64,000 nucleotides of DNA, from positions 186,001-250,000 of IMG/VR virus record IMGVR_UViG_3300046787_000408; one strand, given 5' to 3'. Under the pieces are notes generated by a model. The model saw only the letters and a list, made by a program, of their open reading frames with translations. It was not told the DNA's origin and made no database searches. Position numbers and translations under genes: made by a program. Within the stretch, counting starts at the first letter, position 1; the number at the start of each line of letters is the position of its first letter. Positions 26,257 through 63,519 of the stretch are shown in pieces.

Positions 26257-26795
26257 TGTTTGAACATTTATTAGAAGGTCTGCAATACAAAGACCTAGAC
26301 GGCATGATGAAGAGCACCGTTCACATTGATGAATTTGCCAGCAAAATGGGCGATGATGATGACATCATTGTACTGAGCTTTTTTGTACGTGATCTACAAG
26401 CAGCCAAGGATCTTGTAAACTGGTTTGAAAAGGGCTATGACTTTGTGTTGGACGCTGATCGCTCACCAGGTGAAATCAAACCCAGTCGCTACTTGGTGTA
26501 TGTAGAGATTCGTCGTCGCTCAAGTGCGCCCGGAGCTGTACAAACATTGTTGGACGATCTTGGCACCTTGACAGAATTTGAACCCGGTGACTGGCAGATG
26601 CGTTACCAAGGTCGCACACAGCCCTGGAGCGAAGAAGCATTTGCCAAAGCAGTGCCCTTGACTCCCAATGCATACAGACAAGCCAATCAAGGCGAACTAA
26701 ACGAAATGCGAGCAGCAGCAGGCTTGGCACATCGTCCAGTACATGTACCTTCAGCAGAAGTACGTTCACTACAAAGTATGGCAGGCATCCGATGA
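26256..26795 (+). CDS. hypothetical protein
   Basis: 179 aa, tight coupling. Confidence 0.75.
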   Translation: MFEHLLEGLQYKDLDGMMKSTVHIDEFASKMGDDDDIIVLSFFVRDLQAAKDLVNWFEKGYDFVLDADRSPGEIKPSRYLVYVEIRRRSSAPGAVQTLLDDLGTLTEFEPGDWQMRYQGRTQPWSEEAFAKAVPLTPNAYRQANQGELNEMRAAAGLAHRPVHVPSAEVRSLQSMAGIR

Positions 26796-27928
26796 GAGCA
26801 AACCAATTTATATCCAATGATAGTGACGCAATGCGCAAACCAACTTCAGAGTCTGTGGCAGGACCTGAAAAGTGCTGGCCCGGATACCGCAAGGTAGGAA
26901 CACAACCTGGCACAGGTAAGAACGCTGGCAAGCGTGTGAACGACTGCGAAAAGATCAAAGAAGATGACGTGGCTGAAGGCATTCTTAATAAAATTGCCAA
27001 CAAAGTAATGGGTGCTGCTCCGGAACAACCAAAGTACAAAGTTGGCCAACGAGTCAAGTACGAAACAAGTCCGCAGCAACCTGATTGGGAAGATGGCGGC
27101 AGTGGCGTCGGCGTAATAACTTCTTACAAGAATGGTCACTATATGATTAACGGTAATCCAGTTAATCACTTTGAGATTAAAGGTGTGGTAGAGCAAGGCG
27201 TGGCGGAAGGCTGGGTTGATACTATCAAAAATATATTCAAGCGTAAACCAAAGGACAATCGAACCGTGTTTGACAGAGATCCAGAAGCAATGCGTGAATT
27301 TGAACGATCAGGTGGATACGAAGCCGGCTTAGATATCATGGGTTGGCAAATAGGTTGGTTTGCTGCCGAACACGCCCAAGGTGATACGATGCAACAAGCG
27401 TTTTCAAAGTTATATTACGGCGGCGGTAGCCCAATGCCGTTTGATAATCGTTCATTCAAGCTAGCATGGGTAGCATACAACAAACACCACGGTCCTCAAA
27501 TAGCAGAGCAAGGTGTGGCGGAAGGCAACTATGACAGAGATGACTACTACAATGCACGTCAAGGTAGAGAATACGGCAAAGACCTAACTGCCACAGGCTA
27601 TGGCGGTGATGGATCAAAAACTCGTCGAGATGACATCTTCAAAGGACAAAGCAAACGCTTGCCCGCAGATCCTTTTGCTCGTACCAGTGGTGCTGTGCCA
27701 AAAAGTGGTACAGGACGAATTCACAGCAATGCACTACCTGGCGAAATGGATGAAGCCAACGATCAAAAGATTGGTGGACGTTATGATGCTGACGACTTTG
27801 ATGACATGGTGTCAAGACTGAAAAAATTAGCGGGCGCAGGTCCCATGAAAACAGTATACGATCCTAACCGTCGCGTGTACCGCAACATGCCCACAGCACA
27901 ACAACCTGCACAACAGCCCAAAAAATGA
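26792..27928 (+). CDS. modular protein, putative capsid internal polyprotein
   Basis: MRANQFI start; three (Q/D)GVAEG-type junctions separating unrelated modules. Confidence 0.75.
   Translation: MRANQFISNDSDAMRKPTSESVAGPEKCWPGYRKVGTQPGTGKNAGKRVNDCEKIKEDDVAEGILNKIANKVMGAAPEQPKYKVGQRVKYETSPQQPDWEDGGSGVGVITSYKNGHYMINGNPVNHFEIKGVVEQGVAEGWVDTIKNIFKRKPKDNRTVFDRDPEAMREFERSGGYEAGLDIMGWQIGWFAAEHAQGDTMQQAFSKLYYGGGSPMPFDNRSFKLAWVAYNKHHGPQIAEQGVAEGNYDRDDYYNARQGREYGKDLTATGYGGDGSKTRRDDIFKGQSKRLPADPFARTSGAVPKSGTGRIHSNALPGEMDEANDQKIGGRYDADDFDDMVSRLKKLAGAGPMKTVYDPNRRVYRNMPTAQQPAQQPKK
27190..27211 (+). repeat. QGVAEG DNA repeat copy
   Basis: AGAGCAAGGCGTGGCGGAAGGC. Confidence 0.9.
27505..27526 (+). repeat. 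QGVAEG DNA repeat copy
   Basis: AGAGCAAGGTGTGGCGGAAGGC. Confidence 0.9.
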
Positions 27929-28997: not shown

Positions 28998-29960
28998 ATG
29001 AACATCAAAAAAATTATAGCCATACTAGCACTTGTACCAGGACTGTCACTAGCCTGGCAACCTACAAAACCTGTTACAGTGGTATTCCCCAACGGACCGG
29101 GTGCTGGCAACGAAATCTCATTCCGCATTGCAGCTGATATTGTAGAAAAGTCCACTGGTGTAGTGTTCAAGCCCGAGTATCGTCCAGGTGCTGATGGCAA
29201 CATTGCTATGAATCACTTTGTAACAGTACCGCGTGACGGGCATACCATTAGTGTACCTGCTTGCCAATCAAATTGGGTAACTCCTGAAATCTGGTATCCC
29301 AACATGATCAAGTACAGCCCTATGGATCTAGAACCTGTTGCTAACATTGCTCGTAGTCCTCTAGCGTTCTGGGCACACCCTAGCAGCCGGATCAATACGC
29401 CAGAAGAATTTGTGGCTGCTATTCGTAATCGGCAACGAATGACCGTGGCCATTGGCGGTGGCGGGCACAAACTGGCTGTAGAATATCTTGTGGATAAAGT
29501 AAGTGTAGCAGGCAGTGATAATCTGCAAACTGTTTCTTACAAAGGTCCTGCACAGGCTCTATTAGATGTCATGGGCGGACATGTAGAATTTGGGGTAACA
29601 CCTGTAGCAGTGGGCTATCCGCATGTGCAAACTGGCAAGCTCAAATTCATTGGTATAGCTGATACCCGCACTTTGCCCGGGCTTGAACACATTCCTTTGA
29701 TGAGCAAGGCTGCTCCAGGACTCAGCATACATGGCTGCTGGAACTTGGCCTTGCCGCCAGGCACCCCACAAGAGATTCAAACTTGGTATCGTGATCAGTT
29801 TGTACCAGCAATTCGTTCAGCTGAAGCTGCTGCCAAGTTCAAAGAAAACATGATGTATACTACTCCTGCTGAGCACAGTGCTGCAGGTGTTAGAGCCAGC
29901 ATGGCACGCCTGCAACAGACATGGCAACCAATTGCTCGCAGAATTGATCCTAACAAATGA
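28998..29960 (+). CDS. Bug/TctC-family periplasmic solute-binding protein
   Basis: WQPTKPVTVVFP..PG, RPGADGNIA, PRDGHTI, YKG.AQALLDVMGGHV. Confidence 0.9.
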   Translation: MNIKKIIAILALVPGLSLAWQPTKPVTVVFPNGPGAGNEISFRIAADIVEKSTGVVFKPEYRPGADGNIAMNHFVTVPRDGHTISVPACQSNWVTPEIWYPNMIKYSPMDLEPVANIARSPLAFWAHPSSRINTPEEFVAAIRNRQRMTVAIGGGGHKLAVEYLVDKVSVAGSDNLQTVSYKGPAQALLDVMGGHVEFGVTPVAVGYPHVQTGKLKFIGIADTRTLPGLEHIPLMSKAAPGLSIHGCWNLALPPGTPQEIQTWYRDQFVPAIRSAEAAAKFKENMMYTTPAEHSAAGVRASMARLQQTWQPIARRIDPNK

Positions 29961-38031: not shown

Positions 38032-38794
38032 TCACTACGCTACCTTGGGCGTGAGCCGAACTGCTTCCGCGGATGAAATCAAACGAGCATTTAGAAAGCT
38101 GGCTAGCCAACACCATCCAGACAAGGGTGGGGACACTGCCAAGTTTCAACAGATACAAGCTGCCTACGACACACTTGGTGATGCCAACAAACGTGCTGCT
38201 TACGACAATCCTGCTCCGCAATTTTCAGGATTTGGCGGCAGCACACAGTTCAACAACATACATGACATATTCAACATGTTTGGGCAAGGCTTTCCAGGCC
38301 AACAGCGCCGTAATCATGTTCGCATGAGCTTGTGGATCACGTTGCGTGATGTAGCAACAGGTGGCCGGCGTCCTGTGAGTTTGAGCACTGGGCAAGGTCA
38401 AAACACTGTGGAAATTGAGATTCCGTTAGGTCTCAATGACAATGACTCTATTCAGTATTCTGGCTTGGCACCAGGTGGACAAGATCTAGTGGTCACTTTT
38501 AGAATACAACCAGATGCAAATTGGTCTAGATCTGCCCTAAATCTTGCTACTGAACAAACTGTTAGTATTTGGGATTTGATACTAGGCGGAGACCTAGTGG
38601 TCAAAAGTATAACTGGGGAGAGTTTGACTGTGACTATCCCTGTAAATACTCAACCTGGCACAGTATTACGGCTACGAACACAAGGGTTAAGAGATCAACA
38701 AGGACGGCAAGGCGATTTGCATGTGAAACTGGCAGCTCGAATTCCACAACCTATACCACCCGAACTAGCCGCAGCAATACAACAGTACCGATAA
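38024..38794 (+). CDS. DnaJ/CbpA-type co-chaperone (no zinc finger)
   Basis: J-domain HHPDKGG; C-terminal DnaJ substrate-binding domains. Confidence 0.92.
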   Translation: MLDHYATLGVSRTASADEIKRAFRKLASQHHPDKGGDTAKFQQIQAAYDTLGDANKRAAYDNPAPQFSGFGGSTQFNNIHDIFNMFGQGFPGQQRRNHVRMSLWITLRDVATGGRRPVSLSTGQGQNTVEIEIPLGLNDNDSIQYSGLAPGGQDLVVTFRIQPDANWSRSALNLATEQTVSIWDLILGGDLVVKSITGESLTVTIPVNTQPGTVLRLRTQGLRDQQGRQGDLHVKLAARIPQPIPPELAAAIQQYR

Positions 38795-38803
38795 CCAAAA
38801 TAC

Positions 38804-38832
38804 TTGCGTTTATTGGGCAGATATCTTATAAT
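38804..38832 (+). promoter_or_regulatory. sigma70-type promoter
   Basis: TTGCGT-17-TATAAT. Confidence 0.6.
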
Positions 38833-38859
38833 GTAACATACGCATCATTTAGGAACCAA

Positions 38860-41133
38860 ATGCAAAACAATCCCGAAATTGAACAACTGGTAGACCAAGC
38901 AGTAAAAATTGCTCGCACCAAACAGCACGAATATGTGCTGACTGAACATCTTTTGCTGGCCATGATTCAACACGTGCCGTTTCGCAAAGTGGTGGAAAAA
39001 TACGGTGTAGAAGTAGAAATGATGGAAGCAGAACTGGATGCTTATCTTGACAGCCAGATGAATCTTGTACGGGATCGAGCAGATCTTCAGCCCAGAAAAA
39101 CACAAACACTGGAACGAATTTTTAACCGTGCCAATGTGCAGGCAATGTTTACTGGTCGCCGTAGTCTTAGTGTAATCGATCTTTATCTTTCAATCATGGC
39201 CGAAACCAACAGCCATGCACACTACTATTTGCTAAAGTACGGCATTCGCAAAAGTGAGTTTGTGGAGTTCTATCAAAAGACTTATTCTCAGTCCGACGTC
39301 AAGTTGAGTACACAACAAGCTGACGATATCCTAACTGAACATTGCACCAATATCACTGCACAAGCCGCTGCCAATCAGTTGGAGCCCATGATTGGTCGTG
39401 CCACTGAGTTGCAGGAAATGATCACAGTGATGGCACGACGATTCAAAGCCAACGTTCTCATGGTAGGCGACCCAGGTGTGGGCAAAACTGCTATCATTGA
39501 TGGCTTGGCCCAAGAGATTTTGGCTGGACGTGTTCCCGAGTTCTTGAAGGGTCATGAAGTATGGAGCCTAGAAGTTGGCTCCCTGCTGGCAGGAAGCAAG
39601 TATCGCGGTGAGTTTGAAGAAAAGTTCAAGCAAGTTATTGCTGCCTTGGAAGCCAAAAAGAACTGTATCTTGTTTGTTGACGAAGCACACACCATGAAAG
39701 GTGCAGGAGCCGGATCACAAAGCAGCTTGGACTTTGCCAACATGCTGAAACCAGCTATTACCAAAGGTCATTTGAAAGTTGTTGCAAGTACTACCTGGGA
39801 AGAGTTCTACGAAAGCTTTGAAAAGGATCGTGCGCTAATGCGTCGATTCCATCGCTTGAGTATTGATGAGCCAAATGCCAGCACTACTGAGCAAATCTTG
39901 ATTGGCTTGAGTCCTAGGCTGGAACAGTTTCACAATGTGTTAATTGATACAGAAGCCATGACAGCCGCAGTTGAACTGAGTGGACGTTACATTCATGATC
40001 GCAAGAACCCTGACAAATCAATTGACTTGTTGGACGGTGCTTGTGCTAGAGAACGTGTGAAAGATGCAGGTACTGTTACAATCACACGAGACATGATCAT
40101 GGCGCAAGTTAGTAAAATAGCCAATGTGCCCATGGATCGACTGCAAAACGAACGCAGTACCAAGATTCTTGAACTGGAAAACAACATCAAGCAAAAGCTG
40201 TATGGACAGGATGCTGCTGTGGATGCTGTGCTGGAACGAGTGTACATCAACTTTTCAGGCATTGGTAACGAGACTCGCCCCATGGCCAGCTTCTTGTTCC
40301 TGGGCCCAACTGGTACTGGTAAAACAGAACTGGCCAAACTGTTGAGCGATAACTTGGACATGAAACTACTCAAGTACGACATGAGTGAGTATCAAGAAAA
40401 GCACACAGTATCTAGCTTGATTGGCGCACCTCCGGGCTATGTGGGCTTTGAAGATGGCAACGTGGGCGGCGGCAAACTGATCAGTGACATTACTAAAAAT
40501 CCATTCAGTATCATCTTGTTTGACGAGATTGAAAAAGCACACCCAGATGTATCAAACATCTTGTTGCAGATGCTGGACGAAGGTCATATCACAAGCTCTG
40601 CAGGCAAACGAGTAGATGTCAAAAACACCATTATTATCCTGACTTCAAACTTGGGTGCCCGAGACAACGAAGGCAATGCTATTGGCTTTGGATCACAAGA
40701 AAAAACCGGCAACGAAGACAAAGCCATGAAAGAGTTCTTCAAGCCTGAACTGCGAAATCGTATTGATCAGATCTGCAGATTCAACAAGCTGGACCAGTTG
40801 GCTATCAAGAAGATCGTGGTCAAGTTTGTGGATCAACTCAAAGCAAGTTTGTCCAACAAAAACATTCGACTCAACATGAGCGAAGCAGTAATTGACTTGC
40901 TGGCCGAACAAGGCTATGATCCTAAAATGGGTGCTCGTCCCTTGAGTCGCAAAATTGATGAACTGATTCGTGTGCCACTTTCAAAGAAGATCCTGTTTGA
41001 TCGACTTAGCGATTGCACCGTGACTGCACACTTGGTTGACAAACAAGTAACATTTGAAGTAGATGCATTACCAGTTACTGGTGCGGACGCTGACGGATTT
41101 ATTCAGGTGGATCATGGTAACATCGGCATTTGA
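38860..41133 (+). CDS. clpA: ClpA-like AAA+ chaperone
   Basis: Two Walker A motifs (GDPGVGKT, GPTGTGKT), LIGAPPGYVG, DEIEKAHP, IGF ClpP-binding loop, no M-domain; start MQNNP after SD AGGA. Confidence 0.93.
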   Translation: MQNNPEIEQLVDQAVKIARTKQHEYVLTEHLLLAMIQHVPFRKVVEKYGVEVEMMEAELDAYLDSQMNLVRDRADLQPRKTQTLERIFNRANVQAMFTGRRSLSVIDLYLSIMAETNSHAHYYLLKYGIRKSEFVEFYQKTYSQSDVKLSTQQADDILTEHCTNITAQAAANQLEPMIGRATELQEMITVMARRFKANVLMVGDPGVGKTAIIDGLAQEILAGRVPEFLKGHEVWSLEVGSLLAGSKYRGEFEEKFKQVIAALEAKKNCILFVDEAHTMKGAGAGSQSSLDFANMLKPAITKGHLKVVASTTWEEFYESFEKDRALMRRFHRLSIDEPNASTTEQILIGLSPRLEQFHNVLIDTEAMTAAVELSGRYIHDRKNPDKSIDLLDGACARERVKDAGTVTITRDMIMAQVSKIANVPMDRLQNERSTKILELENNIKQKLYGQDAAVDAVLERVYINFSGIGNETRPMASFLFLGPTGTGKTELAKLLSDNLDMKLLKYDMSEYQEKHTVSSLIGAPPGYVGFEDGNVGGGKLISDITKNPFSIILFDEIEKAHPDVSNILLQMLDEGHITSSAGKRVDVKNTIIILTSNLGARDNEGNAIGFGSQEKTGNEDKAMKEFFKPELRNRIDQICRFNKLDQLAIKKIVVKFVDQLKASLSNKNIRLNMSEAVIDLLAEQGYDPKMGARPLSRKIDELIRVPLSKKILFDRLSDCTVTAHLVDKQVTFEVDALPVTGADADGFIQVDHGNIGI

Positions 41134-42764: not shown

Positions 42765-43562
42765 ATGACCACAATTGTAATCATGCCTGGCGGCTTCCAT
42801 CCCTATCACGCAGGGCATCACGCCCTTTATCAAAGTGCGCAACGCACATTTCCTGATGCCGAAGTGTATGTTGCTGCAACCAACGATACCAGTTCAAGAC
42901 CTTTTCCGTTTGCTGTAAAAGAAAAACTAGCCCGATTAGCCGGAGTTGAAACTGGGCACTTTGTACAAGTAAGTTCGCCATTTCGTGCGGCCGAAATAAC
43001 CAGCAAGTACAATCCTGAAAAAGACGTCTTGATCTTTGTGCGCAGTGAAAAAGACGCCAACTCGCAACCACAACCTGGCGGAGTCAAAAAAGACGGGTCA
43101 CCTAGTTACCTACAACCTTTGTTGGGTGCTCGAAAGCTAGAGCCATTTGCCAAGCATGCTTACATGGCCTACTTGCCCACAGTAGAGTTTGGTCCAGGTA
43201 TGACGTCGGCCACACAGATTCGTAGTGCTTGGCCCAGTTTAGACGAACGCCGCAAAACAGCTCTTGTGATGAGCCTGTACCCCAAGACGCAAAGCAACAC
43301 CAAGTTAGCTGCCACAGTGGTCAAACTGTTGGACACAGCCATTGGCAGTGAGCATGGTGTGGCGGAAGGTGCTCCGATTGTGGTAGCACAGGCTCCTATC
43401 GATATTCGCAATCCTAAAAAGGCTCCACAGCCATATAGAAATCAGGGCGACATTGTTCCGCCAACAACCCCGCCAAGCACTGAGAAGCGTGGCGTTAAAG
43501 GTCGTCCTGGTCAAAGACCTATGCCTCAACACAACGAAAACAACGATTACCTAGATGAATGA
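42765..43562 (+). CDS. HxGH cytidylyl/nucleotidyltransferase with appended C-terminal module
   Basis: IMPGGFHPYHAGH, PFPFAVK, SATQIR; EHGVAEG junction before tail. Confidence 0.8.
   Translation: MTTIVIMPGGFHPYHAGHHALYQSAQRTFPDAEVYVAATNDTSSRPFPFAVKEKLARLAGVETGHFVQVSSPFRAAEITSKYNPEKDVLIFVRSEKDANSQPQPGGVKKDGSPSYLQPLLGARKLEPFAKHAYMAYLPTVEFGPGMTSATQIRSAWPSLDERRKTALVMSLYPKTQSNTKLAATVVKLLDTAIGSEHGVAEGAPIVVAQAPIDIRNPKKAPQPYRNQGDIVPPTTPPSTEKRGVKGRPGQRPMPQHNENNDYLDE
43350..43369 (+). repeat. QGVAEG DNA repeat copy (HGVAEG variant)
   Basis: GAGCATGGTGTGGCGGAAGG. Confidence 0.85.
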
Positions 43563-44691
43563 CGTGTACTGCCCTTTGATATTCAAAGGTATGTATTTGG
43601 AACGGCACAGTGCTGATACCAGTTTAGTTGCACCTTGTTGCGCTGCAACTGGAGAATTGGTCAACAACTCTCAGGTTAATTTTAACACTAATCCTTTTTT
43701 GTCAAGGCTTCGTAAAGAAAACCAAGACGGCATTGCCAGCAAAGAATGCAATGTGTGTTGGGATCAAGAGAAATATACTGGCCGTAGCCTTAGAACCAGT
43801 TCAGTTGAGTACTATGCTAATTTCAAAGATAGTCCGTTACAAACAACAGAATTAAAAAATCTAGACTGGAACGTAGAACCAATATGCAACGCCAAATGCG
43901 TTATATGCAGTAGTTACCACAGTAGCGCTTGGGCCGCTGAAGATCAAAAATTTATACCCGGTGCTGCTTTGCCTATACGAACAGCCTCACTAGCAAAAAG
44001 CAACAGTATTATTGATGCTGTGGATTTTTCAACTGTAAAAAGAGTTTATTTCAACGGTGGGGAACCAGTACTAAGTCAGGACCCTGAATTTATTTTACAA
44101 AAATTAGCAGATTCTGGAAACCTTGAAAACACTCAAATAGCATTCAACATGAACGGCAGTCGTATGCCTTCAAAGAATCTAATTGATTTGCTCAAGAGAG
44201 CAGAACATGTTACTGTGTTTTTGAGTATTGACGGCACCGATCAACAATTTGAATACATACGGTATCCTCTGAACTGGATCCAGGTCATGTCCAATATTGA
44301 TCAAATAATGCAAATGGGATTCGACGAGGTCTGCATGACCACTGCACTGGGTATTCATAATATTCATATTGCCCAGAGCACCGAAGATTGGTGGAATGAT
44401 TATACAAAAAGTTATCGTGATCAAATTGGTATAAACAATACGTATCAACTTGTGGTTGGGTTGCTTGGTATCAACTCAGCTAGTAGCACTCTTAAAGATC
44501 AACTGTTGATAGATTTTCAGGGACAGCCTGGGAGGGTCGCTGAGCTAGTAATCAATTGTTTGGAATCATGCACAGGTAGCAACCAATGGATTGATTGGTT
44601 AGATACGTTGGATCGTCGGAGAGCTTTGAGTTGGCGTCAAACTTTTCCTGAGCTATATCTAGCTGTGCAGCGAGAAGGGGCTGCAAAATAA
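43555..44691 (+). CDS. radical SAM protein with N-terminal Cys cluster
   Basis: CNAKCVIC, FNGGEP, SIDG, YIRYP; N-terminal C..PCC..CxxC. Confidence 0.88.
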   Translation: MNDVYCPLIFKGMYLERHSADTSLVAPCCAATGELVNNSQVNFNTNPFLSRLRKENQDGIASKECNVCWDQEKYTGRSLRTSSVEYYANFKDSPLQTTELKNLDWNVEPICNAKCVICSSYHSSAWAAEDQKFIPGAALPIRTASLAKSNSIIDAVDFSTVKRVYFNGGEPVLSQDPEFILQKLADSGNLENTQIAFNMNGSRMPSKNLIDLLKRAEHVTVFLSIDGTDQQFEYIRYPLNWIQVMSNIDQIMQMGFDEVCMTTALGIHNIHIAQSTEDWWNDYTKSYRDQIGINNTYQLVVGLLGINSASSTLKDQLLIDFQGQPGRVAELVINCLESCTGSNQWIDWLDTLDRRRALSWRQTFPELYLAVQREGAAK

Positions 44692-56619: not shown

Positions 56620-57691
56620 CTAGTTTTGCCTCATCTGGTTTTGGTAGCTTCTCTGGATTAGCTTCCCATGATGCTTTAGCCTGCTCGCCAATCTTGCCTT
56701 CGTATGGGCAAGGTGTACCTGCTGCTAGCATAGCATCAAACACTCTACGGTCCTGACACATAGTTGCCACAGCAGCTACTTTCATTCCCATGTCGTACAA
56801 AGTCTTGCTTAACTTCAAGCGTTCACAATTCATATCACGTACTGTTCCGCCTGAACTTACGCCAAACACTTGTGTTTGTACGCTACCGGAACTGCCTGTT
56901 GAACATAGATCAGCATTACCACCACTTAACATAGCAGGTGCTACAGCAGTTGGTGGAGGTTGAATTACTCGCTGAGTAATAGTGCTTTCGTTAATGTTAC
57001 GGTTGGTCATGTCACCAGTCTGCACGTTTTGATTCACTGCGGTACTGGTGTTAACGTTGTTGTTAACGTTGTTACTGGTTGACGTAGACGTGTTGATATT
57101 ACGGTTGGTCATGTCACCTGTGTTGACGTTGTTGTTGGTAGCCGTACTGGTGCTTACGTTGTTATTGTTGTTAGTAGCAGTGCTGACATTGTTGTTGTTG
57201 TAGGTCATTGTGCCACTATTGATATTGTGGTTGGTATTGGTGTTGTTGCTGGTACTAGAACTAACGTTGTTGTTGTTGTAGGTCATTGTGCCAGAGTTGA
57301 CATTGTTGTTGTTGTAGGTCATTGTGCCAGAGTTGACATTGTTGTTGTTGACCGTGCTGGTACCCGAGTTGATATTGTTGTTGGTGTTAACACTGGTACT
57401 GGTATTAGTATTGGTGTTAGCACTGGTGCTATTGACCTGGGCAGTACTGTTGCTGTTTGACGTGCTGTTGGTGTTGCTGTTTGACGTCACAGTGCTGGTA
57501 CTGTTGCTGGTACTGTTGGTATCAACCAAGGTTGATGAATCGTAGGTCCCTTGATTGATCAACTGAGTGTTGTTGGTAGTAGTGCCGCCTGTGCTAGTGG
57601 CAGTACTGGTGTTGGTGGTTTGTGCGCCGACGGCTGCTACAAACACCAGGCTGGCTAGGCCCATGGCAATTTTTCTTTTCATTTTGCTCAC
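56555..57691 (-). CDS. secreted Asn/Thr-rich repeat protein with Cys-containing C-terminal domain
   Basis: Signal peptide; NNNNVNSGTMTY repeats; LCSTG..NCERLKLSKTL..MCQD..TPCP; C-terminal hydrophobic anchor. Confidence 0.8.
   Translation of the reverse strand: MSKMKRKIAMGLASLVFVAAVGAQTTNTSTATSTGGTTTNNTQLINQGTYDSSTLVDTNSTSNSTSTVTSNSNTNSTSNSNSTAQVNSTSANTNTNTSTSVNTNNNINSGTSTVNNNNVNSGTMTYNNNNVNSGTMTYNNNNVSSSTSNNTNTNHNINSGTMTYNNNNVSTATNNNNNVSTSTATNNNVNTGDMTNRNINTSTSTSNNVNNNVNTSTAVNQNVQTGDMTNRNINESTITQRVIQPPPTAVAPAMLSGGNADLCSTGSSGSVQTQVFGVSSGGTVRDMNCERLKLSKTLYDMGMKVAAVATMCQDRRVFDAMLAAGTPCPYEGKIGEQAKASWEANPEKLPKPDEAKLDDNYKKIGIGAILGVLVHKLF
57267..57350. repeat. 36-bp perfect tandem repeat (2.3 copies)
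   Basis: TTGTTGTTGTTGTAGGTCATTGTGCCAGAGTTGACA x2 plus partial. Confidence 0.9.
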
Positions 57692-58101: not shown

Positions 58102-58294
58102 TATAATGGAAACCACAACTGCTGGTTCAGTAGCCACTGTGAGCATGCCTTTAGGCGGAGTGAAAACAAGAAATGGTGGATCAATGTTAACAGGTAAATA
58201 TGTAACGGATTCGGACCCAACTCCAAATACGCCTAAAGAATACAAGAGGAATAAAAATGTTAGCGGACGCTTTAAAAACACTCCTGGCAACTGA
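58088..58294 (+). CDS. small protein, putative internal protein
   Basis: MKMRDIME-TTTAGSVA start; SD AAGGA. Confidence 0.65.
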   Translation: MKMRDIMETTTAGSVATVSMPLGGVKTRNGGSMLTGKYVTDSDPTPNTPKEYKRNKNVSGRFKNTPGN

Positions 58295-58697
58295 GTACGC
58301 TTTTGTCACAAAAGCACAACAGTTCCACTGGAATGTGGAAGGACCAGACTTTGGCCAACTGCACAAGTTCTTTAACATGATCTACGATGATGTGTATGGT
58401 GCAATTGATCCCACAGCTGAATACATTCGTGCGCTGAACGAATATGCTCCTGGTAGTTTTGAGCGTTTTGCAGAGTTATCTCGTATTTCTGGACAAACAA
58501 AAATTCCACGTGCTCGACTCATGCTTGAAGAATTGCTGGCCAACAATGGTCAAATGATAGAACTATTAAATGAATGCTTTGGGGAAGCTGAACAAGAAAA
58601 CCAACAAGGCATCATGGACTTTTTGGCCTCGCGTATTGACGCTCATCAAAAGCATGGCTGGATGTTGAGAAGTTATTTGAAAGACCAACGAGCATGA
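58257..58697 (+). CDS. dps: Dps/ferritin-like DNA protection protein
   Basis: FHWNVEGPDFGQLHKFF, AEYIRAL, KHGWMLRS; SD GAGG. Confidence 0.92.
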   Translation: MLADALKTLLATEYAFVTKAQQFHWNVEGPDFGQLHKFFNMIYDDVYGAIDPTAEYIRALNEYAPGSFERFAELSRISGQTKIPRARLMLEELLANNGQMIELLNECFGEAEQENQQGIMDFLASRIDAHQKHGWMLRSYLKDQRA

Positions 58698-59425
58698 ATC
58701 ACGACATACGATCAATTCTAGATCGACTAGCCACAGTGGAGAGTCGTACTACTCCAGTTAATGTCAAGTCTGGGCTGAATGCACAACAAAAAAGTGTACC
58801 ACAATTACCAGCTTTGTTTCAGCCACGCAACATCAGCACAGTGCTCAAAAGTAAAAAAGACCCTGCTCATCCCATGAAGGGCGAATTTGTGGGAGACTCA
58901 GTTGAGCCACAAGCACCAAGTTTGGCAGAAACCATGCAGGCTGTGGAAGAAGACATGCTGGGCAAAGTCAAACGTGACTTTGTAGACTACCTAGAACGTC
59001 TAGAAGACAAAAACAAAATTGACAAGGCCTTGGTACACAAAGCCAAGCAAGAACTTGACATAGAAGATCCCATTGAAGAAGATCCCACACAAGCTGAACC
59101 AGCTGGCATAGCCCCACCTGCTCCAGCACAAGATCCTGTGTTGCCCGAAAGCGACTTTGAGGATTCAGAACTAGCACATGACATTGACCAAACTGCTGCA
59201 AGTCAAGCAGTAGCAGCGGAACAACCAGTCAAAACAGTGGCCATGGAAGATGGCGCTGTGTTAGAAATCTACGGCGACCAAGGTCGCGGGTTTGAAGTAC
59301 GACACGGTGGCCGTAGTTTGCCCACACGCTTTCCCAATATTGATCACGCTGACATGGCAGTGAAGATTTTCCAAAAACGCAGAAAAAACGCTGACTTGGA
59401 CCAAGATTACCTGGAAGAAAAATAA
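58694..59425 (+). CDS. hypothetical modular acidic protein
   Basis: 243 aa; ends DYLEEK like the DYLDE end of 42765. Confidence 0.75.
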   Translation: MNHDIRSILDRLATVESRTTPVNVKSGLNAQQKSVPQLPALFQPRNISTVLKSKKDPAHPMKGEFVGDSVEPQAPSLAETMQAVEEDMLGKVKRDFVDYLERLEDKNKIDKALVHKAKQELDIEDPIEEDPTQAEPAGIAPPAPAQDPVLPESDFEDSELAHDIDQTAASQAVAAEQPVKTVAMEDGAVLEIYGDQGRGFEVRHGGRSLPTRFPNIDHADMAVKIFQKRRKNADLDQDYLEEK

Positions 59426-59426
59426 A

Positions 59427-61454
59427 ATGTTTGTAGATGACCTCTTTGACCAAAAAACACTAACTGAAGCCCAAGGCGGCGGCAGTCCTTGGCACTCAGA
59501 ACCTGAGCAACAGACCATTGACGCTACTCGTCAGGCACGGTTGAATCGCGAGCGTGAACCTGCTGGCAGTGATGCTATTGATGCTAGACTACGAGCACAA
59601 AATGATCAGTTGGCACAGTATGCACAAACAGGCAACTTTTGGATCAAGCGCAAAGACACACAAGAACACATTAGTGATGCCATGGTAGGCAAGGCTGCTG
59701 CTGTGGCTGCTGCACAGGACATGTTGAAACAACAACCTGACTTGCGTGGCAACATTGTGATCACAGCATATGGTCCGGGTGAAACTCAAGGTGTGGCGGA
59801 AGGCGCCGGGATACCAACCGATTGGATGGGAGTCCCTACTAGATTGTCCAAGAACGACAAGAAGCCAATCAAGAGACCATCCGGGTATGATGAATATATC
59901 AAGCGCGGCGCCAAACAAGGATTCCAAGATGATCCTACTAATCCTTTGCGTAAAAAAGTCAAAGAGCAAGGTGTGGCGGAAGGCATGATGGATAATCCTG
60001 GTGAACAAGACTCGCCAGTAGCACAAGCTATCATTCGCAGAATTCTAATGCAGCGTACAGACCTGTTGGCCAAACACGGCCCAGAAAAAGTTGGACAGGC
60101 AGTAGACGAAGTTGCTGACTTTGTGGGCGATGTAGATGAAATTGGATCTAGCGATGTGTCAGGTTGGGTTCGTCATGTTGAGCAAATGCTGGGCAACATG
60201 GGCGAAGGTCTAGCAGAAGGCCAATTAGACGAACTTAGTTTCAAAGACATTCAAAAAAGCGCCAATAAGTTTGCCAAGGGCGCAAACAAGTTTACAAAAA
60301 ACGTAGCAGACACCGGTGCTGCCGTAGGCAATGCAGCTGGAGCATTAGGTGGTGCAATCAAACAAGTAGGCAAAACAGCTATTGCTGATCCAGTAGCTGC
60401 AACATACAATGCTACCAAGTCAGGCCTAGGTAAAGCATCCAATGTTGCTGCCAACACATACGGTGACCTAAAAAAAGGTGTACAAGCTGTTGGCAAAGCT
60501 GGGCAAACCGTTGGCACAGATATTGGAGCAGCAGGCACAGCCGTTGGTAAAGGCATACAAAGTGTAGGTCGTGGAGTTGCCAATGTTGCAGGCGGTACTG
60601 CTGGAGCATTAGGATCAGTTGCTGGTGGTGCTACTACTGGACTTGGTCGTGCAGCAGCTCGCGGATTCAATACCGGAGTACAAAATGTAGGCGGCGATGC
60701 CATTGACAAAATGCAAACCAACATAATGACTCCCAAAGCTGCTGACATACAGAAACAAATTGCTACCAAGCAAGATGAAATCAAAGCTTTGCAAGCAACA
60801 CTGGCTGGTGAACAATCTGCTGCTGCAACGGAACCCAAAGCTGGTATACAAACTGGTGCCACTGCATTAATTGATCCTGACACTAAGCGGCCTTACGAAA
60901 AAGACAAGCTGGCATCCATGTACGGATACAAAGAACCTGAAGCAGCCGATGCTGATAAAACTCCAGCAGCACCTGCTGCTCAGCCGCAAGGATTTAGTGC
61001 AGCCAATGTGATGAATTTGCCAGGCATGGCAAAGACTGCTGCTAAACCAGCAGCGCCTGCTAAAACAGCCAACTTTGCTGGCCCTGGCGGATACGGAGCA
61101 ACTACAACTGGCATCAAGGCTCCGGCTGCACCTAGCTCACCAGCGCTGGCAGCTCCTAAACTACCTGGTGCGCCTCGAGTTACTGCTGGTGGACCAACGC
61201 CAGCTGAAAAAGCCAATCTTGACAAGCGTATAGCAGCGGCAGCTCCGGCTGTGGCTGAAGCTTTGGCACAAGTTGAACGCATGTTGGAAAGTGTCAACAG
61301 CAAGAAAAGTGCGGAAATGGTCAAGGCTTATGTGGATCAGAGGTTTACAGAACTAGGCCTACGCAACACTACTGAATGCCGTAGCATCATGGCACGTGTG
61401 GTACAAGAATCAGCTATTCGTCGCAGACAATATGCGAAGAGTCTAGCAAAATAA
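59427..61454 (+). CDS. modular protein, putative capsid internal polyprotein
   Basis: Two QGVAEG and one GLAEG junction; Gly/Ala amphipathic repeat region. Confidence 0.8.
   Translation: MFVDDLFDQKTLTEAQGGGSPWHSEPEQQTIDATRQARLNREREPAGSDAIDARLRAQNDQLAQYAQTGNFWIKRKDTQEHISDAMVGKAAAVAAAQDMLKQQPDLRGNIVITAYGPGETQGVAEGAGIPTDWMGVPTRLSKNDKKPIKRPSGYDEYIKRGAKQGFQDDPTNPLRKKVKEQGVAEGMMDNPGEQDSPVAQAIIRRILMQRTDLLAKHGPEKVGQAVDEVADFVGDVDEIGSSDVSGWVRHVEQMLGNMGEGLAEGQLDELSFKDIQKSANKFAKGANKFTKNVADTGAAVGNAAGALGGAIKQVGKTAIADPVAATYNATKSGLGKASNVAANTYGDLKKGVQAVGKAGQTVGTDIGAAGTAVGKGIQSVGRGVANVAGGTAGALGSVAGGATTGLGRAAARGFNTGVQNVGGDAIDKMQTNIMTPKAADIQKQIATKQDEIKALQATLAGEQSAAATEPKAGIQTGATALIDPDTKRPYEKDKLASMYGYKEPEAADADKTPAAPAAQPQGFSAANVMNLPGMAKTAAKPAAPAKTANFAGPGGYGATTTGIKAPAAPSSPALAAPKLPGAPRVTAGGPTPAEKANLDKRIAAAAPAVAEALAQVERMLESVNSKKSAEMVKAYVDQRFTELGLRNTTECRSIMARVVQESAIRRRQYAKSLAK
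59787..59804 (+). repeat. QGVAEG DNA repeat copy
   Basis: CAAGGTGTGGCGGAAGGC. Confidence 0.9.
59963..59984 (+). repeat. QGVAEG DNA repeat copy
   Basis: AGAGCAAGGTGTGGCGGAAGGC, identical to 27505 copy. Confidence 0.9.
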
Positions 61455-61567: not shown

Positions 61568-62434
61568 ATGATATTGGAATTTGTCTTTCCCACAAACCGT
61601 ATTGAAGTGCAAGTTGACTTGTTGGAAAACCCAGGAGTGCAAGTCTGGACCAACAAGTTTCTAAATAACAATTACACCACCTCCGTGCTAGCACATGACC
61701 ACTTGTGGGTTCCCGAAATGGATACTACAAAGTTCAATCATGCTGTAGCTGAGTGTAGCCGCTTGATTGGTCAACTAGTGCAGTACGGCATAATATATTC
61801 AGGACCTGATATCAGCACTGTTGACCACAACACACTTAATCGTGTGCATAGATTTTTTACCCACAACCAGCAACGATGCAATGTTAGAGATTTTGGCAGC
61901 AACTTTGACTATGACTCAGTAATGAGCATGTTGGATAGAGTAAACACTCATGTGCATGAACTAGAAAGTTTTTTGCCACGTGGACCAGCTGATATTCCAG
62001 TTACACAAATTGAAGAAATAAAACTATATCATCCTACTCAGTATGGTACTTCTGATTGGATTGATTTGACTGGCTATCGTCAGTATCATAGTAGCCAACA
62101 CCATGACATAATACTCAGTTCAGAAGTACTGGGCAAGACTCTATTACAAAGCTACCTGGACCAAGACGATCCAACTGACTGGGATACCTCGGGACACTAT
62201 GTGTCTGCTGGTGGATTACAAATTGCTTACTTGCCAACCCGACAGCAAATCTATCAAAGCAACAGTTTCAAGCAATGGCTTGCCCAATACAATGCTGACC
62301 CAGTTGATCTAATGTATGATTTTCCTATTGGTAACATACAGGATCGGGACACGGGTCCATTCCAGCAAGTACTAGCTGAACTGGATCATTGCAAATTTAG
62401 CGATGTGACAGTGAATTACAGAAAGAAAACATGA
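61568..62434 (+). CDS. hypothetical protein
   Basis: 288 aa; LNRVHRFF, N.HVHELE, LGKT motifs. Confidence 0.75.
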   Translation: MILEFVFPTNRIEVQVDLLENPGVQVWTNKFLNNNYTTSVLAHDHLWVPEMDTTKFNHAVAECSRLIGQLVQYGIIYSGPDISTVDHNTLNRVHRFFTHNQQRCNVRDFGSNFDYDSVMSMLDRVNTHVHELESFLPRGPADIPVTQIEEIKLYHPTQYGTSDWIDLTGYRQYHSSQHHDIILSSEVLGKTLLQSYLDQDDPTDWDTSGHYVSAGGLQIAYLPTRQQIYQSNSFKQWLAQYNADPVDLMYDFPIGNIQDRDTGPFQQVLAELDHCKFSDVTVNYRKKT

Positions 62435-63519
62435 AATACTACTGCTCAGACCAGTTCAAGACCATGCATATACGCAGCACCAACTCAGGGCAAGTGCTTG
62501 TGAGTCCGTGTTGTGCAGCACAAACTGACCCAGTGGTGGCTGACAAATTTGATTTTGCTACCAACGAGTTTTTGCAGCAGACAAGACAACATGCTGTTGA
62601 TGATACTCCTGCGCCTGCTTGCAGCAACTGCTGGCGCCAAGAAGCACAAAATCCGCCTAGCCGTAGATTTTTCAGCAATCAAAACAAAAGCCAAGACATT
62701 CGTGTTGAACTCAATCGCATTGATGTGACCACGCAAAATGTATGCAATTTGGCTTGCATTATGTGCAGTAGCTACAGCAGCAGCACGTGGGCACGTGAAG
62801 AAGGCTTAACTGATCAAGACTACAGCTTTGAAGACAAGCTACAACTGTTTCGTAGACTGGACTTTTCTCATGTGTACCAAATGCATTTCACTGGTGGCGA
62901 ACCGCTAATGAGCACTGAGCATTTGAAAATGCTAGGCATCTATGCAGAATCTTCGCCACTAAGTCAACTGCACATCAGCTACAACACCAATGGTACATTC
63001 TTTCCTGATCAACGTGTGTTGGATACATGGAGTCAGGTTAAAGCCATAGATCTTGTGATCAGTTTAGACGCAACTGGTGCCGCATGCGAACTTATACGCT
63101 GGCCAGCTAAGTGGGAACAAATTGCTGCCAACATTGCTCAATTCTTTGAATTACGAACCCAAATGCCACACTTGAAAATTGGGTTCATTAGTTGTGCCAG
63201 TAACTACAATCTATTTGAGTTAGCAAATGTAATAGACTTTGTACACAGTCATGATCCTGATCTCACTGTGCATTTTCAAGTCAACCACAAGCCGTACTTT
63301 GCGCCAGCCTTGATTCCGCCCGAAATGGTGGAGCCAGTAATAGCTCGATTGGCGGCATATCCAGAATTAGCAAACTTGCTGCCCACAGCTCAGACTCAGT
63401 TGGATCATGCTCGTTATCAAAGAGAAATTACAACCTACCATCGATTAATGGCCGAAATGGAAACCAGACGTGGCACAGATTGGAGATCAGTGTTGCAAAT
63501 TGGCAAGTACATGAGTTGA
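62431..63519 (+). CDS. radical SAM protein with N-terminal Cys cluster
   Basis: CNLACIMC, FTGGEP, YNTNGT, SLDA, IRWP. Confidence 0.88.
   Translation: MKYYCSDQFKTMHIRSTNSGQVLVSPCCAAQTDPVVADKFDFATNEFLQQTRQHAVDDTPAPACSNCWRQEAQNPPSRRFFSNQNKSQDIRVELNRIDVTTQNVCNLACIMCSSYSSSTWAREEGLTDQDYSFEDKLQLFRRLDFSHVYQMHFTGGEPLMSTEHLKMLGIYAESSPLSQLHISYNTNGTFFPDQRVLDTWSQVKAIDLVISLDATGAACELIRWPAKWEQIAANIAQFFELRTQMPHLKIGFISCASNYNLFELANVIDFVHSHDPDLTVHFQVNHKPYFAPALIPPEMVEPVIARLAAYPELANLLPTAQTQLDHARYQREITTYHRLMAEMETRRGTDWRSVLQIGKYMS

Follow-up and report, generated by a model that had tools for sequence, protein, structure and literature searches.

In phages with a T4-type head, the prohead protease cuts after glutamate within a short motif, and its substrates are internal proteins targeted to the capsid (PMC9026906, PMC5694885). 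Substrates are brought into the prohead by a short N-terminal capsid-targeting sequence, and propeptides are often cut at several sites (PMC9026906, PMC5694885); the internal protein cargo of T4-type phages varies strongly between related phages (PMC9026906). In the giant phages phiKZ, 201phi2-1 and SPN3US, propeptides of about 125 residues (124-127 in the head proteins of SPN3US) are cut several times after Glu, and diverged paralogues share identical N-termini (PMC5694885). In the T-even tail-fibre adhesin gp38/gp37, conserved glycine-rich motifs and His boxes bound hypervariable segments and have been proposed as crossover points (PMC3157838). The gene described here is located at 59427-61454, on the + strand, in a stretch of viral DNA of 64,000 nucleotides (nt), referred to as the window, which corresponds to bases 186001-250000 of the 299,983-bp IMG/VR record IMGVR_UViG_3300046787_000408. 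It encodes a mosaic protein of 675 residues (P0001), in which unrelated modules are joined in frame by an 18-nt linker coding for the peptide QGVAEG. Comparison with its relatives revealed that the linker is where these modules, or cassettes, are added, removed or swapped between alleles, genes and phages; it is probably also the site where the head protease of the phage cuts the protein.

The likeness to the T4 internal proteins (IPI, IPII, IPIII and Alt, with gp21 as the protease) lies in a T4-type head with a protease of the S77 family, in a short N-terminal peptide common to unrelated proteins, and in sites with a hydrophobic residue at P3 and Glu at P1, the third and the first residue before the cut. 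The T4 capsid targeting sequence ends in IAE, to be compared with the VAE of the linker. The locus differs in that many cassettes share one frame with a repeated site, whereas T4 has one targeting peptide per small gene; moreover, there is no sequence similarity, and packaging and cleavage are here only predicted from the genes. The propeptides of giant phages carry A/S/G-x-E sites and belong to a phage group other than that of the source phage, and neither a linker at the DNA level nor cassette swapping has been described for their head and ejection proteins. In gp38/gp37, as in the mosaic gene, short in-frame motifs flank variable segments, the motifs being the proposed points of exchange; however, these are receptor-binding proteins whose segments are loops of one fold, while here unrelated, self-contained modules vary in order and number and the motif is protease-like. 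Searches of Pfam, PHROG, NCBIfam and structures revealed no homology of P0001 to tail-fibre adhesins, and the mosaic gene resembles gp38/gp37 in its mode of evolution, not as a member of the family. Variable cassettes between recognition sequences conserved at the nucleotide level, and cut by a protease, are also found in cyanobactin precursors, where the cores are of 6-8 residues and dedicated maturation enzymes are used; here the modules are of 50-400 residues and no such operon is present. The likely function is similar to that of T4 internal proteins and giant-phage propeptides, without membership of those families by sequence or structure. Three features appear not to have been described before: unrelated cassettes within one frame, a linker conserved in its codons across hundreds of environmental phages, and the use of a candidate protease site as the linker.

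The open reading frame (ORF) at 59427-61454 is a real gene, with 613 homologues in databases and conserved synteny. Its product is composed of a leader, an N-domain, a basic cassette of 60 residues, a helical module of 79 residues, a Gly/Ala-rich region and a C-terminal helical bundle, all the corresponding features being on the + strand. The leader (residues 1-28, MFVDDLFD..TLTE|A.., 59427-59510) is near-invariant in the alignment of the orthologues, and a metagenome contig diverges from the window at 59512. The folded N-domain (residues 25-120, 59499-59786) exists in at least three alternative versions among orthologues, and parts of it are found at C-terminal positions in other proteins. 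The linker, CAAGGTGTGGCGGAAGGC at the DNA level, is present in exact form at 59787-59804 (copy 1, residues 121-126), where homology breakpoints fall, at 59967-59984 (copy 2, residues 181-186) and, in another gene, at 27509-27526; near-matches are located at 27194, with one mismatch, and at 43353, with two. The body of the basic cassette extends from 59805 to 59966, and the mobile unit is made up of this body and copy 2 (59805-59984). Since the two copies of the mosaic gene are exactly 180 nt apart and the enclosed 60 residues include 13 K/R and 8 D/E, the basic module of 180 nt (60 residues) reported in a preliminary description of this DNA is confirmed. That description placed the repeats at 59787 and 59963: the first position holds, while the second linker copy starts at 59967, and 59963 is the start of a longer exact identity (59963-59985 versus 27505-27527). 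The shared stretch is thus as reported, except that it measures 23 nt and not 22.

Downstream of copy 2, the helical-hairpin module (residues 187-260, 59985-60206, with helices at 197-233 and 241-259) is widespread; its 79 residues have no match in Pfam, PHROG or NCBIfam. It is closed by a degenerate linker, GLAEG (residues 261-265, 60207-60221), with a second hydrophobic-x-Glu site (NMGE) just before it. This copy had been correctly placed 237 nt later, counting from the GGT of the second copy. The C-terminal part of 410 residues (60222-61451) starts with QLDEL and a long amphipathic Gly/Ala region, also as described (residues 293-435 are 43% G+A), and ends with the helical bundle (residues 590-675). 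A transmembrane role of the Gly/Ala region was considered and rejected, as the highest Kyte-Doolittle mean over 19 residues is 1.06. Some homologues of the 410-residue part carry LysM. The AlphaFold2 model of P0001 has a mean predicted local distance difference test score (pLDDT) of 56, and is confident for the N-domain (residues 25-118; scores of 82-94 over the domain), the hairpin (197-259) and the C-terminal bundle (590-675). The linkers fall in low-confidence stretches between the predicted folded parts, copy 1 being at the start of one of them. No significant match to the model was found by Foldseek in PDB, and, apart from viral clusters without a name, searches of the ESM Atlas yielded a single structural lead, a weak one, to a cluster with T7_gp14 as a partial label. 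The protein is not assigned to any Pfam, PHROG or NCBIfam family.

Eleven orthologues sharing the leader were aligned; all of them, except for two diverged ones (P0021 and P0026), also share the C-terminal part of 410 residues. They differ by whole blocks, whose ends coincide with linker copies. The interval between the N-domain and the helical module is filled by zero, one or three mutually unrelated cassettes, of 54-72 residues or more, each with one linker; a further cassette of 63 residues follows the helical module in three orthologues, and in one lacking this module QGVSEG is joined directly to QLDEL. The 60-residue cassette is precisely absent from P0021 and P0026. At the DNA level, the homology blocks found in relatives extend over 59787-59984 (89.9% identity) and 59965-60221 (80-87%), each of them covering one module and both of its linkers. 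Homologues carry 0-8 linker copies per protein. When the 262 collected family members were compared, 13.9% of the internal ends of local alignments were within 3 residues of a linker, versus 2.9% for random positions (maximum 3.5% in 200 trials). The segments between linkers belong to different clusters and have no mutual similarity, for which reason a tandem-repeat protein, expanded by slippage, was rejected as a description of the gene.

The cassettes are not confined to orthologues. Fifteen other proteins, of 469-1151 residues, contain the 60-residue cassette, with 77-96% identity and at positions ranging from 1 to 705. In all 13 copies not cut by the end of a record, the alignment covers exactly residues 1-60 of the query, and every junction present in the 15 proteins is of the linker type. 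They contain no other module of the mosaic gene, apart from a partial match to the N-domain in P0127. Copies of the helical module with 83-97% identity are present in more than 70 proteins, at positions from 14 to 815, and an exhaustive search detected the module in 1018 protein clusters at 50% identity, in proteins of 116-1506 residues and sometimes twice in the same protein. In 127 representatives newly found by this search, [LIVM]AEG occurs 2.8 times per 1000 residues, versus 0.13 expected from composition, with a median spacing of 101 residues. The cassette at residues about 235-295 of P0002 contains two DnaJ-type CxxCxGxG zinc-finger motifs; LysM domains (P0025, P0037, P0090) and DUF6321 (P0110) were observed among the cassettes of other relatives. 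The pool of cassettes therefore includes recognisable small domains.

Exchange also involves the three linker-bearing genes of the window, namely the mosaic gene and those at 26792-27928 and 42765-43562, as their modules co-occur in single relatives. P0043 combines the N-domain and the helical module of the mosaic gene with the tail of the 26792 gene; in P0082 the helical module is followed by the tail of the 42765 gene, and the N-domain of the mosaic gene sits at the C-terminus; similar combinations are found in P0084 and P0099. The suggestion of the preliminary description that modules could move between loci is borne out by the presence of the 60-residue cassette in 15 other proteins and of the helical module in 1018 clusters. 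The same modules do occur in different host proteins, as it had anticipated; that they would always be flanked by QGVAEG does not hold, since the flank is often a hydrophobic residue followed by any residue, Glu and Gly. The resemblance of the linker peptide to a protease site, discussed below, had not been considered.

Variation at the linkers was also looked for in metagenomes, by placing the contigs of public runs, taken from the Logan collection and built from 31-mers, on the mosaic gene. In an independent lake metagenome, a contig of 151 nt joins 59786 to 59967, skipping exactly 180 nt (59787-59966); at the joint, 18 nt fit either side, and there are three differences on each side (96% identity). 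P0021 and P0026, which lack the cassette, agree with this deletion allele. In two other metagenomes, contigs of 442 and 1484 nt contain cassette DNA 100% identical to that of the window, preceded by an upstream sequence unlike it, and in both the break falls inside linker copy 1. Another contig follows the N-domain up to 59804 and then enters a different cassette. Loose contig ends are concentrated in 59786-59804 and 59952-59986. As the repeat is shorter than the 31-mers from which the contigs were built, it is unlikely to have been collapsed in assembly.

Conservation of the linker DNA goes beyond the needs of the peptide. When the whole genome was searched regardless of codons, GVAEG was located five times, always within the three window genes listed above, and all five sites are coded GTG-GCG-GAA, although GCG is the rarest Ala codon of the genome (6.1% of Ala codons); the chance of this triple is 0.015 per site, giving P of about 8e-10 for five sites, if independent. 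The same holds for relatives that were collected through protein patterns lacking the motif, where GCG encodes the linker Ala in 21 of 28 distinct contexts, versus 9.5% in the same ORFs, and for four more genes, detected by similarity of their proteins (17 of 20 copies; background 11.5%). Altogether, GCG is used in 38 of the 48 copies ascertained at the protein level, versus a background of about 10%. In five other jumbo-phage records, 10 of 11 codon-blind matches to GVAEG are GGTGTGGCGGAAGG, and a control pattern gave none. A comparison of synonymous sites in 14 sequences showed a modest excess of identical codons (0.71 versus 0.53), because many junctions in that set are degenerate, and the codon counts (21/28 and 17/20) are the stronger test of DNA conservation. 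The exact 17-mer of the linker is present in more than 119 IMG/VR viral contigs; in 157 of its 160 occurrences the QGVAEG frame is the longest open one, with a median of 559 codons versus at most 46 in the other five frames. Taken together with the codon bias, this means that the linker is always coding, in one frame, with its synonymous sites kept. All copies are direct and in one frame, none being inverted. For a second subtype, [EQ]DVAEG, the DNA was read in two copies, both coded GAT-GTA-GCA-GAA; as this subtype has codons of its own and heads the same C-terminal module, linkers would seem to be inherited, as DNA, along with their modules. A full-text literature search for QGVAEG or GVAEG returned nothing relevant. 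An internal ribosome-binding site within the linker, prompted by an AAGGTG located 11 nt upstream of the ATG with which the helical module starts, was rejected as a general explanation, because most cassettes have no start codon at their beginning.

These data also bear on the idea that the repeat is a coincidence of chance or codon bias, or that the mosaicism arose artificially when metagenomes were assembled across a short repeat. The comparative data do come nearly all from metagenome assemblies. However, five linker matches were observed in the window versus 0.03 expected from shuffled sequences, the codon choice runs counter to the genome bias, the frame is kept in 157 of 160 copies, and the same architectures recur across different samples and sources; in addition, a repeat of 18-23 nt is shorter than the 31-mers underlying the Logan contigs. 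Both chance and assembly artefact are excluded for practical purposes.

The nature of the junctions was evaluated by comparing the residues found at module borders. Upstream of the helical module, 55 distinct junction contexts were collected, including GVAEG, GVGEG, GVEEG, NLPEG, SVTEG, DMDEG, GITEG and similar sequences: Glu-Gly is almost invariant, and V, L, M, I or F is nearly always present two positions before Glu. Downstream junctions keep [VIML]-x-E, and the next residue varies (G, A, S, V, E and others). Copies of the 60-residue cassette follow the same pattern. Canonical copies read VAE|G, MAE|G and LAE|G, and in degenerate ones the hydrophobic P3 and the Glu at P1 are kept, with P2 and P1' varying. 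P0001 contains hydrophobic-x-Glu sites at residues 12, 123, 178, 183, 258, 262 and 267, and none between 268 and 608. In many homologues the first linker is located at residue 115-125, close to the length of the SPN3US propeptides. The octapeptide MF[ILV]x[DE]LF[DE] starts 40 of the 262 collected proteins, and heads both mosaic proteins and the cytidylyltransferase-like orthologues of relatives (L013, L017, L043, L109, L121 and L135); in the source genome it is found on the mosaic gene only (59427-59450), and the cytidylyltransferase-like enzyme of that genome lacks it. The N-terminal leader is therewith a candidate capsid-targeting sequence. Among the relatives bearing cassettes, some have a terminase gene next to them and match (E about 1e-10) a PHROG with the annotation virion structural protein.

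A protease able to use such sites may be expected from the head genes of the source phage. Outside the window, the genome (GC content 45%; record rated 81% complete) contains a T4-type head module with portal, S77 prohead protease, scaffold-like proteins and major capsid protein. The protease gene (G000:34640-35272) matches PF03420 (E 8e-25) and phrog_207 (E 3e-59), and is flanked by the portal and major capsid genes; it was also found in two near-complete relatives. The major capsid protein (G000:36402-37598) has LxE at residues 5, 17, 32 and 40, all within its first 43 residues, and only two further hydrophobic-x-Glu in the remaining 355, which suggests a short N-terminal propeptide cut several times. 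Its identity of 61-66% to the capsid proteins of Pseudomonas phage PA5oct, Vibrio phage 2.275.O and the Erwinia pEa_SNUABM phages places the source phage, as judged from its genes, in that T4-related group: it is an uncultured freshwater jumbo phage of the PA5oct-like type. The public runs containing the window sequence are freshwater and lake metagenomes; in one of them a contig of 5,424 nt spans the mosaic-gene stretch with zero differences, and this run may be the source sample of the window itself. Nucleotide and protein searches of 50,697 GenBank phage records returned no match to the mosaic gene, so that the gene is absent from the cultured relatives. Bacterial genomes totalling 596 Gb, scanned with the 18-mer, contained 56 stretches, nearly all of them single copies and many of them in actinomycetes and varied metagenome-assembled genomes, with no usable host signal. 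The only match of the bacterial collection with three copies is L200, a contig of 8,950 bp binned in a Bacteroidetes metagenome-assembled genome, which is probably a phage contig binned with it.

On balance, and by a limited preference, the gene is regarded as a hypervariable mosaic of polyprotein-like organization, shuffled by recombination and probably processed in the capsid. It would be assembled from independently folding in-frame cassettes of about 50-110 residues, each ending with QGVAE followed by G. That the 18-nt linker DNA is the point of deletion, insertion and exchange between alleles, genes and phages can be held with high confidence. Recombination inside the linker, homologous or based on micro-homology, would fairly probably bring about the exchange in the course of replication or co-infection; each crossover would copy the linker, so that its codons stay uniform and lineages with the canonical DNA remain exchangeable. 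With a confidence just short of even, the linker would in addition be a hydrophobic-x-Glu|Gly site for the T4-type (S77) prohead protease of the phage. The product would enter the prohead, possibly by means of its N-terminal leader, and be cut into small proteins that are either retained in the capsid or ejected into the host, and the turnover of cassettes would vary the capsid cargo. A stronger version, in which the linker is an in-frame recombination signal kept for that purpose, a coding counterpart of the attachment site of integrons, and freshwater phages share a pool of cassettes cut by the protease into injected effectors, is considered improbable.

The main rival is an uncleaved multi-domain protein, for example cell-wall-binding or structural, in which the linker acts only as a spacer between domains and a recombination site. 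It explains cassette exchange fully, with no need for cleavage, and the LysM domains of some relatives are typical of intact multi-domain proteins; yet in a passive spacer there would be no need for a fixed Glu and, two positions ahead of it, a hydrophobic residue amid neighbours that vary, and the motif fits the specificity of the protease family encoded by the genome. This alternative is judged possible, though rather unlikely. Less room is left for a dedicated system, in which an integron- or shufflon-like recombinase, or a homing nuclease, recognises the 18 nt and moves the cassettes. The conservation of linker codons across many diverged phages and the precision of the breakpoints, to the base, would be accounted for in this way. 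Against it, the copies are all direct, in one frame and never inverted, and degenerate copies grade smoothly into the canonical linker; neither the neighbours that were scanned nor the conserved syntenic genes include a member of any integrase, recombinase or nuclease family, in a 300-kb genome largely made up of unknown genes. Such a system is accordingly regarded as a slight prospect.

The vicinity of two of the three linker-bearing genes to paralogues of the N_Twi radical S-adenosylmethionine (SAM) family, which adjoin them or are one gene away, raises the analogy of a multi-core precursor of ribosomally synthesised and post-translationally modified peptides, with the linker as recognition and cleavage sequence and the twitch-domain radical-SAM enzymes as maturases. 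A pair formed by orf288 and a radical-SAM gene, downstream of the mosaic gene, is syntenic in close relatives, in line with this analogy. The paralogues, however, are seven or eight, scattered in the genome, and the adjacency may be due to chance; more distant relatives keep the mosaic gene without a radical-SAM neighbour; and cassettes of 54-110 residues in a protein of 675, the well-modelled two-thirds of which fold into domains, are unlike known precursors. Such a role would be very improbable.

Returning to a shuffled gene whose product is processed in the capsid, several observations weigh against it. Cleavage and capsid location of P0001 are drawn from sequence, while the shuffling is shown by the comparisons. 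A loose hydrophobic-x-Glu specificity leaves the conservation of the full QGVAEG unexplained, and the protease reading therefore rests mainly on the degenerate copies. The gene has Dps-like and radical-SAM genes around it and is distant from the head module. In a relative of 342,865 bp (G001, which holds L069), rated 99% complete and containing four linker copies, no match to protease, capsid or portal was detected, while the portal of the source phage has a match in three other relatives and its protease in two of these; a different head type, masking of the sequence or a miss of the search could explain the result, which is taken as uninformative. As to the recombination itself, an identity of 18-23 nt is short for efficient homologous recombination, exchange is deduced from its products and not from events directly observed, and the deletion allele is represented by one contig of 151 nt, with a depth of 2.4.

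Phage mosaicism is usually described gene by gene, and here the unit of exchange is a cassette smaller than a gene, whose boundaries can be read in the sequence. The conservation of these boundaries, codon by codon, across hundreds of environmental phages provides a tractable natural system in which the way short shared sequences drive modular protein evolution can be studied. Many small uncharacterised phage domains are also delimited by the linker, including the 79-residue module, absent from Pfam and found in more than 1000 clusters. If the linker is a prohead-protease site, these genes would encode variable sets of proteins delivered by the capsid, a class that counters host defences at injection; it could then be used as a handle to search metagenomes for capsid cargo and as a design element for packaging foreign proteins. 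If the reading as recombination signal and source of injected effectors were also true, it would represent a previously undescribed way to diversify the injected arsenal of a phage.

The two other linker-bearing genes of the window are on the + strand as well. The first array (26792-27928, 378 residues) contains DVAEG at 26966-26980 and QGVAEG at 27194-27211 and 27509-27526, and its modules recur in relatives of the mosaic gene. The gene at 42765-43562 encodes a cytidylyltransferase/adenylyltransferase-like enzyme, recognised below the Pfam cut-off, to which HGVAEG (43353-43370) joins a C-terminal tail cassette of 64 residues; its orthologues have either no tail or quite different ones, of up to several hundred residues.

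The order of genes around the mosaic gene is kept in relatives, in the sequence orf96, Dps-like, acidic 243-residue gene, mosaic gene, orf288 and radical SAM, and the part from orf96 to the mosaic gene is stable even where the mosaic content is wholly different; in P0056, from a contig of 318 kb, seven linkers are present at the same position of the locus. The acidic protein of 243 residues (58694-59425, + strand), a conserved upstream partner, has its stop one base before the start of the mosaic gene. The Dps/ferritin-like gene (58257-58697; PF00210, E 3e-23) also neighbours the mosaic gene in distant relatives, either upstream or downstream of it. A C-terminal tail of the DYL[DE]E type is found in two of the 485 genome ORFs of at least 80 residues, the cytidylyltransferase-like enzyme (..NNDYLDE, 43542-43559) and the acidic protein (..DQDYLEEK, 59402-59422), whose orthologues end with DYLDEK, DYIDETNK and DYLEEK; this tail may be a shared C-terminal docking peptide.

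Some further genes were recorded. The twitch-domain radical-SAM family, NF033640, is represented by the 7-8 paralogues mentioned above, at 43555-44691 and 62431-63519 in the window and at G000:81626, 114169, 115807, 125260, 126517 and 167560. A large Lon-like ATP-dependent protease is encoded at 38569-41133 (phrog_4871, E 6e-235), and a homologue of TctC-type tricarboxylate-binding receptors (PF03401, E 4e-21) at 28998-29960, two genes past the first array. A protein of 378 residues, encoded on the - strand at 56555-57691, has a signal-like N-terminus followed by very long Asn/Thr/Ser-rich repeats, and is 82-86% identical in close relatives.

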